A stretch of DNA of 63,816 nt, filler included, from Lenisia limosa (Eukaryota > Protista > Breviatea), in NCBI GenBank assembly GCA_001655205.1. It is 13 parts of 13 records of this genome, joined end to end, with 100 filler letters (N's around TTAATTAATTAA, not from the genome) between each part and the next. Parts side by side here need not be neighbours in the genome. Positions count along the whole stretch, not along the records: positions 51,392 to 55,605 come from LPNZ01007904.1; 12 more parts are not named here. One strand, written 5' to 3'. Position numbers and translations under genes: made by a program. Positions 51,292-55,725 of this stretch are shown piece by piece. A model generated the notes under the pieces. It was not told the DNA's origin. It saw only the letters and a program-made list of their open reading frames with translations, and ran no database searches. Within the stretch, counting starts at the first letter, position 1. Each line of letters opens with the position of its first letter.

Positions 51292-51841
51292 NNNNNNNNN
51301 NNNNNNNNNNNNNNNNNNNNNNNNNNNNNNNNNNNTTAATTAATTAANNNNNNNNNNNNNNNNNNNNNNNNNNNNNNNNNNNNNNNNNNNNTTATGGCAG
51401 ATGTTAACAGAAGTACATCAAAACTACCAAATTTTGGTGTATCTTTTTTATTTCAGATAGACTTCAACAAAAGAATGGAAAGATGATTTACTTTTTGAAG
51501 GAATTTTTTTTTTTATAGGGTTTTATAGGGTTTAGCCGGTCCTGCATATATAAATGTATATATCACCCCCCCCCCCTTTCATNNNNNNNNNNNNNNNNNN
51601 NNNNNNNNNNNNNNNNNNNNNNNNNNNNNNNNNNNNNNNNNNNNNNNNNNNNNNACAGATCCAGGTGAGGGATGAATGAGGGCCTGGGCAAGGGGCAAGA
51701 TGTATCTTACTGGAGGCAATGGAATAAGGGAACATAAACTGTGGGGTTTTTTGAAATGACTGGTCTTAGGAGCAAATTTTCAAATACAGGGCTCAGTGGT
51801 TGAGATTTGAAAATTAGTTTTTTTTCTTTCTCACTCGACAG

Positions 51842-52409
51842 TCTGAACTGGAAACAGAGCGTCAGAACGTGGAAATGACCGAAAGTGTACTTTTGCAAGA
51901 ACACCGCAAGCGCAAGGCAGCTGAGGCCGGGTATGATGGTGTCCTGTCATGTCACTTTCTGGTCATCCCCACAGGGGATTGGCTCGGGTGATTGTTTCAT
52001 AATTCTGGGAACAAATAATCGCACTCATCCACAATTTGGTTCATTCTCACCTCCCAATATTCTTCATCGACAGTTCCTTCGTTTTACTCCTGTAGATTGG
52101 AGCAAGTCAATGAGACCCTCAGGTCAGTTGCCGCCAAGGCTGATGAAGAAGTCCGTCTCAATGACGAGAAGCTGGCTAGGTTCAAGAAGCATCACAACTA
52201 GCCCCCCCCCCTAATTCACTCACTCTCACTCACTTCATTATTCTCTTATTTCACTCAATACATCCCCCCTCAATCTTCGGCTTACCGAATTGATCAAACA
52301 TTTCAATGTGTACCGTTTTTTTGACAGTAGGGAAGGTCAGAGGACTCTTTCAACCAGCTCTTTGACCAGTAGGGAAGATCAGGACTCTATCAACCAACTC
52401 TTTGTATAG
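51842..52409 (+). CDS. 3' exons of a coiled-coil protein
   Basis: Phase-compatible SELETERQNVEMTESVLLQEHRKRKAAEAG/LEQVNETLRSVAAKADEEVRLNDEKLAR/EGQRTLSTSSLTSREDQDSINQLFV*. Confidence 0.6.
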
Positions 52410-53903
52410 CTTTTTTTAGGAAATAAAGGAAACACTTGAATAGGTTCAGTAGCACCCTGGTGGTGTGCTAGAGAAACCAATCAGGAAAGGGAAAGAGCTA
52501 AATACATACATACAAAAGACACCCACTGCCTCTTGATAAAAGTGATCTACAATGAAGCTGACACCTACCGAAGCCGACAGAAGCAATAATGCCAGAGTTA
52601 AGACATTCTCCAAAATCATTAACATGCAGAGGTGATGATACCGTTGGAAAACCGTTCTTTGTCTTCAAATTGGAAAATTTTTTAAAAAACAACTTAGCGG
52701 GAAAACTTCCAGAAGATAGAATTGTGAATTGTGTGAAAGGATCAGTATGGAAGAGACCTCTACATCTTAGAAACCTATCTATCATCTGTCTTTAGGAATC
52801 AAAAGAACAATACTTACAGCATCCAAATCCCTTTCTTTCTTTTTTTGGGAATAAAAAAATAAGGATTATCTATCAACTGTAGGGGTACAAATTTTAAAAA
52901 AGTTCTCCAATAACATGCAAAAACAAAAGGGTAAAAATAAAAAAAAAACAAGCTTAATATTCTCCCTCGCTTTGCAAAATCAGCCTCATGATATACCCCC
53001 TCCCCCCCCTTCGGGTTCTCCAAATGATGAGTGTTGTAGAAAATTGTCACAAGGAAGGTGGACTCTCGTGATTAAAGGGGAAGGAGGTACTTGTATGGGT
53101 TTCAACTCGGTATTGGGGTGGTGAAGGATGAATGATTGCTTGGAATCTGCCAACATGGGCGATTGCAAAATGTCATCAAATATCAAAAATCAAAAGCACC
53201 TCTGTCATTATAAACAAGTATGGAAGCACTCACCGCTTAACACAGCTTACAGTTGGCTTACGGGGTTTAAAAATCTGAATCTGTCCGCATGTTATCAAAA
53301 GCCTGTTTAGGGGAAAGGGTGTAAGTCGCAAGAGGTTAGTGGAACGAACCAGTTTAAGGGCAAAGGCTACTTCTTTTTATTCCTTTTTACAGCATATTTT
53401 ACTATAAATAAGGATAGCTCAGCGTAGTTCGCTTGGAGCTGCGTTACAACTATATGCCTTCCTGAGAATAAATCGGATCACTATTGTCATCAATTATCGA
53501 TCAATTAAGTATTTAGTCCTAACTATAGGCTATGATAAGGCCGTAACTTTGGAATCTGTAGAACAGCAAAATTTCTCCTGCGGGAAGAAACTAAAATTGA
53601 ACAATATTAACTTTTGACTAAAATTAACAAAACATAAGAGGTTTGAGAGAGGGAGTGGTTGAAAAAAAAAAGACAATGTCACAACAACCCTCGCCGTCGG
53701 ACACGTTACACTGCTTTTTAGGCGATTTTTTCATAAAATTTTAGCCTATTTTCACGGTATTAGATAATAAGACTACAAATAACGTTGTGAAGATACTCTG
53801 ATTAGTTGAAAGTTCTGTTTTAAAGCTGGAGCGACATTGTCGCAGCCTGAAACAGCGATTTAAATAAGAGTTGACCTTATAAATAGGAACGAAACGCTTG
53901 AAG

Positions 53904-55585
53904 ATGAGAAGTTTTTTCTCTCTTTGTCTTCTCGCCTTTCTAACCGCCCTTCCCGTGTCATTCGCCTTTAGTATGTCACAAAATGAATAATCAAGGCATT
54001 GCGTTTCAGTCCCCTCTCCTTTCCGTCATCTTCGGCATGATTGACCTCTATAGACTGCGAGTCTGTCACATCCTGCCACGCATGTCTCGTAGATGCCTCC
54101 TGTGGATGGTGTGCGGATGAAGGAGGAGCCTGTATGACCGGAACAGAGTCTTCACCCCCGGGCAAGTGCACAAACTGGTGAGAGATCGCGTCAGGGTTCA
54201 GAGTTGAGTTATCTTTGAAATCGATTGAATCTCATTGACTTAAGCCACCTCTCCGAGATAATTGCTCATTATATTTTGATGTGATTTGTTTTGGTGTTAT
54301 GGATAAATGTGCAGTTTACTTCAGTAACACTTTATCAATTATCAATCTAGCAATCATGATTAGTCCCGTCATTATGATGATATATTTTCAGTTTTGTTTT
54401 TTTCTCTACATTCCCATTTCCTCCATTATCATCAGATTATTCCTTCATGTTCACAACTTTGTTCTTTCAAAGCTTGATTCAAATTTCAGTCGTTACTTGT
54501 TTCTTAAATTTTCCAAACGTTACTCCCCCCCCCCNNNNNNNNNNNNNNNNNNNNNNNNNNNNNNNNNNNNNNNNNNNNNNNNNNNNNNNNNNNNNNNNNN
54601 NNNNNNNNNNNNNNNNNNNNNNNNNNNNNNNNNNNNNNNNNNNNNNNNNNNNNNNNNNNNNNNNNNNNNNNNNNNNNNNNNNNNTTCGTTTTCTCATCCC
54701 CTTAGTTCAAAGTCAAGGCAGTGGATAAGAGTCTTGACCTTTATGTTATCCAGGATCTGTCAGGATCCTACAGAGGTAGGGAAATAGTGTTTTTTATCAC
54801 AAATATATCTGGACGGGAAAACTCCAAATTTTCCTATTAATCCGCGATGTGTTCAGTTATTGTCAGAACGGTCTTTTGCCAATCTCCCCATAACCCCCNN
54901 NNNNNNNNNNNNNNNNNNNNNNNNNNNNNNNNNNNNNNNNNNNNNNNNNNNNNNNNNNNNNNNNNNNNNNNNNNNNNNNNNNNNNNNNNNNNNNNNNNNN
55001 NNNNNNNNNNNNNNNNNNNNNNNNNNNNNNNNNNNNNNNNNNNNNNNNNNNNNNNNNNNNNNNNNNNNNNNNNNNNNNNNNNNNNNNNNNNNNNNNNNNN
55101 NNNNNNNNNNNNNNNNNNNNNNNNNNNNNNNNNACAAGTCCATGTCGCCTTTTGGAGTTTCAGGGTATGTGTGGATCGTCTCACACTTTTTCTTCTTTTC
55201 TCATCCCTCCCCTCCCCGTTACTTTGCTTGAAATACCCAAGGACCTCACATTCGCAGCGAATACTCCTACAAACACTCACGTGATCTTACGACCGATTAT
55301 AACGCTTTTCGTTCTTCTCTTGGCAGCCTTGTTGTCAAATACGGAAAGGATTACCCCGAGTTTGTGGGATATGGCTTGCAGTGATATATTAATCAACTTC
55401 CTTTGTTTTACGTTTGATCATGCGGTGGTAGGACTCTTCGGTGGTGATGTGCTTTGTGAATGTTTAACAAGACCAAATCCATTACCCTCCCCAGGTCCCA
55501 ACTTGAGGGCCTTATGCATTCAATCATCCGTCCGAATTGGGACGATAACAACAGGAAGCTTGTTTTCCTCACGTCTGACGCGCCG
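53904..55585 (+). CDS. Integrin-beta-like protein: signal peptide, PSI domain, betaI/vWA domain (gapped internally, 3' truncated)
   Basis: E1 MRSFFSLCLLAFLTALPVSFAF; E2 NCESVTSCHACLVDASCGWCADEGGACMTGTESSPPGKCTN(W); FKVKAVDKSLDLYVIQDLSGSYR; YSYKHSRDLTTDYNAFRSSLGSLVVKYGKDYPE/SQLEGLMHSIIRPNWDDNNRKLVFLTSDAP. Confidence 0.75.
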
Positions 55586-55725
55586 GTAGGTGTATAATGG
55601 AGGAANNNNNNNNNNNNNNNNNNNNNNNNNNNNNNNNNNNNNNNNNNNNTTAATTAATTAANNNNNNNNNNNNNNNNNNNNNNNNNNNNNNNNNNNNNNN
55701 NNNNNCAAAAAATTTCCCAGGTACA

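Follow-up and report, generated by a model that had tools for sequence, protein, structure and literature searches.

A probable, divergent member of the integrin-beta family, visible in its 5′ portion, in the genome assembly of Lenisia limosa

The window analysed here is a stretch of 63,816 nucleotides, filler included, joined from 13 records of the Lenisia limosa genome assembly GCA_001655205.1. Within it we analysed the piece at positions 51392-55605 (LPNZ01007904.1; GC 41%), which contains runs of N at 51583-51654, 54535-54684 and 54899-55133. We conclude that the plus strand at 53904-55585 probably carries the 5′ portion of a spliced eukaryotic gene encoding a divergent member of the integrin-beta family. 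An earlier interpretation made from the DNA alone (the sequence-only reading) had described five motif blocks of an integrin-beta-like receptor in this interval, and direct reading recovered all five on the plus strand, in the order it had given. Positions 53904 and 55585 are exactly the first and last visible coding bases, and six exon segments (E1 to E6) with GT..AG borders were laid out on the plus strand between them. The piece ends at 55605, 20 nt past the donor of E6, and the gene continues beyond it. Annotation based on open reading frames (ORFs) overlooked this gene.

The first exon, E1 (53904-53970, +), holds the start codon and a signal-type peptide and leaves in phase 1 at the donor GTATGT (53971); its start is the first ATG downstream of an in-frame stop and has A at -3. 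E2 (54054-54177, +; donor GTGAGA; phase out 2) encodes the PSI domain and joins E1 in frame, the junction creating an Asn codon. E3 (54706-54775, +) enters in phase 0 and leaves in phase 1 at the donor GTAGGG. It encodes the last hybrid-type strand, strand 1 of the beta-I domain and the D-L-S-G-S motif of MIDAS (the metal ion-dependent adhesion site), its peptide being F-K-V-K-A-V-D-K-S-L-D-L-Y-V-I-Q-D-L-S-G-S-Y-R plus one base; the strand ends in LDLYVIQDLSGSYR, and the final base, at 54775, opens a split codon (G..). The start of E4 (+) lies within the assembly gap at 54899-55133, and its visible part (55136-55164) encodes the F-G strand KSMSPFGVSG before the donor AGG/GTATGT (phase out 2). 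E5 (55258-55359, +; donor GTTTGT; phase out 2) carries the block EYSYKH...DYNAF...KDYP(E), and E6 (55495-55585, +; donor GTAGGT; phase out 0) completes the Glu of D-Y-P-E and continues through a helix into a strand ending in L-V-F-L-T-S-D-A-P.

The joins E4/E5 and E5/E6 are both in frame, the split codon of the latter (GA/G) being Glu. At the former, the sequence-only reading had begun the downstream exon at 55242 and had itself flagged the 55164/55242 junction as inconsistent in phase. The frame does shift there, and we rejected the acceptor at 55242. The acceptor CGCAG at 55253-55257 is the sole one in the intron 55165-55257 that keeps the frame open, which sets the start of E5 at 55258; the junction 55164/55258, using the AG at 55256-57, restores the frame, GG/C giving Gly followed by E-Y-S-Y-K-H. 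The complete introns measure 83, 93 and 135 nt, and GC content is 0.49 in exons versus 0.39 in introns. No stop codon or frameshift occurs within any exon, and all splice sites are intact. The predicted splice model draws support from six canonical GT..AG junction sites, three in-frame joins, agreement among the phases and the difference in GC.

To assign the beta-I region to a family, the exons were compared with Pfam and with the sequences in the PDB. The joined exons E4-E6 matched Pfam Integrin_beta (PF00362) at 27.3 bits (E 3.7e-6; cut-off 24.8), and the score rose to 29.4 bits (E 8e-7) when E3 was added; the joined-exon match spans positions 79-145 of the 248 in the profile. VWA_4, which scored highest of the generic VWA models, reached 14.7-16.3 bits on the joined exons against its own cut-off of 27, which places Integrin_beta about 13 bits ahead of any generic VWA model. 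Among PDB sequences, 20 of the 20 matches up to E 10 were integrin beta chains. The top match was the I-domain of Pactolus (2iue; E 0.0019), aligned over E3-E6 from the MIDAS strand to the beta-4 strand; E3 shares 9 of 15 residues with the start of this domain, and the FG pair of E4 aligns to the Pactolus GFG. Residues 179-243 of integrin beta-2 align at about 31% identity over 62 residues. Taken singly, the exons were far less informative: E5 gave 13.8 bits with Integrin_beta, E3 and E6 had no Pfam match, and single exons returned only noise from the PDB and the ESM Atlas.

The N-terminal part of the predicted protein agrees in type with this assignment. By the -3/-1 rule only, the product of E1 is a signal-like peptide of 22 residues: M-R-S with one basic residue, followed by a hydrophobic core of 15 residues and then by S-F-A at -3 to -1, ahead of the likely cleavage site. 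E2 contains seven cysteines in the pattern C-x5-C-x2-C-x5-C-G-W-C-x6-C-x11-C, including the CGWC motif. Its unspliced ORF matched Pfam PSI (PF01437) at 26.5 bits (cut-off 23.1; E 8e-6) and PSI_integrin (PF17205) at 22.5 bits, under the cut-off of 27. A HMMER search of 1.84 billion representative proteins with the E2 exon gave nine matches (E 4e-8 to 5e-4), every one a multi-PSI repeat protein and none containing Integrin_beta. We conclude from the translated exon that the predicted PSI domain is real, that its nearest relatives are not informative and that this search yielded no orthologue. The order signal peptide, PSI, beta-I put forward by the sequence-only reading holds, with Integrin_beta as the best Pfam family (29.4 bits, against 14.7 for VWA_4). 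The HMMER comparison it had proposed gave scores above the curated cut-offs for both Integrin_beta (29.4 versus 24.8) and PSI (26.5 versus 23.1), and its own doubt, that the region might score better as a generic VWA protein, was not borne out, as no generic VWA model passes its cut-off. Upstream of E1, a TATA-box-like motif, TATAAATA, lies at 53878..53885 (+), 26 nt before the start codon. It is a possible core promoter, and in that role would imply a very short 5′ untranslated region.

The metal sites were compared with the consensus motifs of 10.1101/2020.04.29.069435 and with the alignments to the PDB matches. At MIDAS, D-L-S-G-S is present, as is the Glu of D-Y-P-E, the fourth MIDAS ligand. 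The sequence-only reading had called this site intact, which is partly established: the DxSxS motif and the Glu are there, and the last Asp is offset by one residue in the HMMER alignment. D-L-S-G-S is the classical VWA form of the motif, beta chains typically having DLSYS or DLSNS, and D-x-P-E, whose Glu serves as a MIDAS ligand, is characteristic of beta-I domains. The synergistic metal-binding site (SyMBS) is incomplete: a Glu follows F-G-V-S-G and D-Y-P-E is present, but the Asn position is occupied by Gly (K-Y-G-K-D-Y-P-E). The distance from the first SyMBS acid to the N-x-D-x-P-E position is about 27 residues, compared with about 55 in animal beta chains. The first position of the site adjacent to MIDAS (ADMIDAS) coincides with the split codon G.. 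at 54775, which may encode Asp, Glu, Gly, Ala or Val, and the rest of that site falls within the second gap.

The specificity-determining loop (SDL) is absent. Between F-G-V-S and Y-S-Y-K-H there are just four residues, about 30 fewer than in animal chains; a further exon would not fit into the 93-nt intron 55165-55257, in which the acceptor before 55258 alone leaves the frame open. The SDL of animals makes contact with the alpha propeller and gives the ligand pocket its shape. Because the loop is absent, ligand binding, specificity or alpha pairing may differ from those of animal integrins. As read from the exons, the putative beta-I domain departs clearly from the chains of animals and from those reported in Obazoa.

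Two gaps interrupt the gene. The first (54535-54684), written as 150 N, is the expected site of a missing exon. A single 3468-nt public contig from a DNA run bridges it with the same strand on both sides and 211 letters between the flanks; since one contig covers both flanks, they are physically continuous. The scaffold length of this gap underestimates the 211 letters of the contig. A direct splice from E2 to E3 was rejected: the phase 2 in which E2 ends does not fit the phase 0 in which E3 begins, and every alternative acceptor near E3 led to a stop or to the wrong frame. A GT/AG-bounded exon was also sought in 54178-54534, where the open segments were only hydrophobic, T-rich junk, and a placement of the exon there was rejected. 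Given these predicted phases, and because 54178-54534 offers no plausible exon, at least one exon of 3n+1 nt must sit in the 211 letters of the first gap. Since E3 aligns from the last strand before the beta-I domain, about 40-45 hybrid-type residues are expected to be absent from the visible exons, and by alignment the exon in the gap is expected to be the first hybrid-domain segment. Of the hybrid domain, into which beta-I is inserted in integrin beta chains, the visible part is the short strand F-K-V-K-A-V ahead of the MIDAS strand, and the second segment would lie past 55605. The proposal of the sequence-only reading that this segment belongs at 54535-54684 agrees with the phases and with the empty interval 54178-54534.

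The second gap (54899-55133) is expected to contain the 3′ end of the intron after E3 and the start of E4. From the Pactolus alignment it would hold about 20-25 residues, including the Asp pair of ADMIDAS and helix alpha-1, and the sizes of both gaps fit the residues missing from a beta-chain head. Public contigs enter the second gap in part, one by 18 nt from the left and a 783-nt contig by 198 nt from the right; the latter also extends 113 nt past 55605. The contigs on the two sides differ in depth (28 versus 17.7). In twelve exact ORF look-ups, the contigs that reach into the gaps showed no called gene.

Runs of 5-11 C lie in the piece at 51566-51576, 52202-52211, 52996-53009, 54525-54534 and 54894-54898. 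All three assembly gaps begin directly after such a run or a few bases later, and the C runs probably cause the assembly breaks. One of them directly follows the stop codon of the gene upstream.

This upstream neighbour (+) is represented by its last two exons (51839-51930 and 52096-52201), which encode a coiled-coil-like C-terminus and end in a TAG stop at 52199-52201. A 1755-nt RNA contig, 100% identical, confirms its GT..AG intron (51931-52095); the piece thus comes from a live eukaryotic genome, in which the neighbouring gene is spliced. The two exons of the neighbour have no Pfam match, and the 1.7 kb between it and the receptor gene contains no ORF recognisable by Pfam. As controls, ten further ORFs from both strands of the piece were compared with Pfam, with no match better than E 0.1, and Rfam had no match to the whole piece. 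No FG-GAP alpha chain was matched among the upstream ORFs on either strand of this 4.2-kb piece. About 140 nt within the neighbour's intron (51956-52096) show a summed contig depth of about 25,000, compared with 28 in the flanks, and many contigs exit this segment into poly-C or into sequence unrelated to it. The segment is a dispersed repeat, present in the genome in very high copy number, with no Rfam match.

If the gene encodes an integrin-beta family member, the protein would be exported, and its beta-I domain would hold a divalent cation at MIDAS, as in the established beta-I mechanism. This cation would complete its coordination through an acidic side chain belonging to a ligand carried by a substrate, the matrix, prey or another cell, with the hybrid and PSI domains acting as a lever. 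The 3′ part, beyond the visible piece, would then be expected to encode a Cys-rich stalk, one membrane helix and a short NPxY tail, and the tail would recruit talin-like adaptors, linking the receptor to the actin cytoskeleton via talin.

Several results weigh against the integrin-beta assignment. The Integrin_beta scores are low (27-29 bits), and because single beta-I exons carry little signal, the integrin signal depends on the splice model. About 98 beta-I residues are visible, corresponding roughly to profile positions 1-145 of 248. The last MIDAS Asp comes one residue late (T-S-D rather than T-D), the HMMER alignment with beta-2 placing Ser at its position, and the SyMBS Asn is replaced by Gly. 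No public contig bridges the second gap, so that it is the scaffold and the collinear match to the domain that tie E3 to E4-E6. The gene has no RNA contig in the study's sole RNA run, though the neighbouring gene is covered; at 46 million letters of contigs this set is small, and its contigs are evidence of presence, not of absence. Finally, no relative combining PSI and beta-I was found, in searches that used single exons and are weak evidence. A homologue search with the E6 ORF found none within a length window of 25-79 residues that makes the blank uninformative, and a metagenome scan with the E5 ORF gave 600 pattern matches, none of them confirmed.

These results leave three other explanations to be weighed. 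The most serious, which lies within the family assignment, is a beta-I protein of non-canonical architecture, in which the metal-dependent binding head is the same but no classical alpha/beta integrin is formed. Such a protein might be a receptor that acts independently of an alpha chain, as Pactolus does, a truncated beta chain, or a fusion resembling the choanoflagellate protease-VWA-PSI protein. The missing SDL, shared with the best solved relative, Pactolus, points in this direction, as do the change from Asn to Gly in SyMBS and T-S-D in place of T-D. Upstream there is no alpha gene in the head-to-head orientation known from Capsaspora and Corallochytrium (PMC5560861), although such linkage is not universal, and truncated and unusual forms of ITGB are documented (10.1101/2020.04.29.069435). 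Yet signal peptide, PSI, missing segment and beta-I follow the exact canonical order of a beta chain, and the 3′ part that would decide the matter lies outside the visible piece. We regard this architecture, and with it an alpha-independent, Pactolus-like mode of action, as possible but the less probable course.

The two remaining explanations would remove the gene from the family or deprive it of function, and both appear unlikely. A generic extracellular VWA protein, Sib-like or other, following a PSI domain would account for DLSGS in place of DLSYS or DLSNS, for the low Integrin_beta score and for VWA_4 as a weak second match (14.7-16.3 bits). However, Integrin_beta exceeds its curated cut-off while the generic VWA models fall far below theirs or give no match, all 20 PDB matches are beta chains in a database rich in alpha-I and other VWA domains, and D-x-P-E with its MIDAS Glu belongs to beta-I domains. 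Sib proteins, moreover, have neither PSI nor the three cation motifs (10.1101/2020.04.29.069435), and the suggestion in the sequence-only reading that the receptor might be Sib-like finds no support, given the PSI domain and the failure of any generic VWA model to win. It is comparably improbable that the exons are real remnants from which no single functional protein is made, either in a pseudogene or in a mosaic of two paralogues wrongly joined by scaffolding. Such a case would fit the RNA contigs, which cover the neighbour and not this gene, the frames of E2 and E3, which do not match as they stand, and the second gap, joined by scaffolding only between contigs of depth 28 and 17.7. Against it, the exons are free of stops and frameshifts and their splice sites are intact, the first gap is bridged by a single contig, and an RNA set of 46 million letters, whose contigs show presence and not absence, says little about a gene that it misses.

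Taken together, the translated exons point to a gene, seen as a fragment, that is probably a new and divergent integrin-beta family member lacking the loop. Integrin beta chains found outside animals are used in dating when the machinery of cell-matrix adhesion arose. Filastereans, ichthyosporeans, apusomonads, breviates, many amoebozoans and Rigifila are already known to possess them, and one more adds little unless its host lies elsewhere. We consider it very improbable that the host is placed outside Amorphea and CRuMs and that the gene preserves an ancestral, loop-less integrin beta head working without a classical alpha partner; if true, this would give the beta-I/PSI receptor an earlier origin in the history of eukaryotes, and we found no support here for that reading. 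If confirmed on a full-length transcript, the integrin-beta family member proposed here would represent a natural minimal beta-I head without the SDL and part of SyMBS. Such a head would let one ask which parts of the domain are required for metal-dependent ligand binding and for alpha pairing.

Among known systems, beta chains outside animals have been described since 2010, in Capsaspora, Thecamonas, Pygsuia, ichthyosporeans, Corallochytrium, Pigoraptor, Syssomonas, many Amoebozoa and Rigifila (10.1101/2020.04.29.069435; PMC5560861; PMC6450878), and truncated and odd ITGB architectures are on record (10.1101/2020.04.29.069435). Likened by description only, the ITGB genes of Obazoa, Amoebozoa and Rigifila (among them Capsaspora, Thecamonas, Pygsuia and ichthyosporeans) resemble the Lenisia gene in having a PSI and beta-I head, a MIDAS motif and introns. 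The three cation motifs are reported to be well conserved in the ITGB of Obazoa (10.1101/2020.04.29.069435), whereas SyMBS is incomplete in the Lenisia gene. Alpha and beta genes are arranged head-to-head in Capsaspora and Corallochytrium (PMC5560861), an arrangement absent from the Lenisia locus. The Sib proteins of Dictyostelium share with the Lenisia gene an extracellular VWA-type head of an adhesion receptor and a motif in the D-x-S-G-S style. They have no PSI domain, three cation motifs or Cys-rich region, while in the Lenisia gene PSI is present and the integrin-specific profile wins; Sib proteins are, furthermore, confined to dictyostelids and have not been found elsewhere (10.1101/2020.04.29.069435).

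With the animal beta chains (beta-2, beta-3, beta-6, beta-7; PF00362) the Lenisia gene has in common the signal peptide, the PSI domain and the segment before beta-I. Also common to both are strand 1 with L-D-L-Y-x-x-x-D-L-S-x-S, the block Y-K-H...L-T-x-D...F, D-x-P-E with the MIDAS Glu, and the strand W...R-x-L-V-F-x-T. It differs from them in having no SDL, DLSGS instead of DLSYS or DLSNS, Gly in SyMBS and T-S-D instead of T-D, and its score per residue is far below theirs. To our knowledge, the only solved relative without an SDL is mouse Pactolus, an integrin beta-2-like protein (PDB 2iue). Pactolus has lost the first Asp of the MIDAS motif (G-L-S-G-S), whereas the Lenisia gene retains it (D-L-S-G-S). 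Because Pactolus is a recent rodent derivative of beta-2, the loss of the SDL common to both is most likely convergent.

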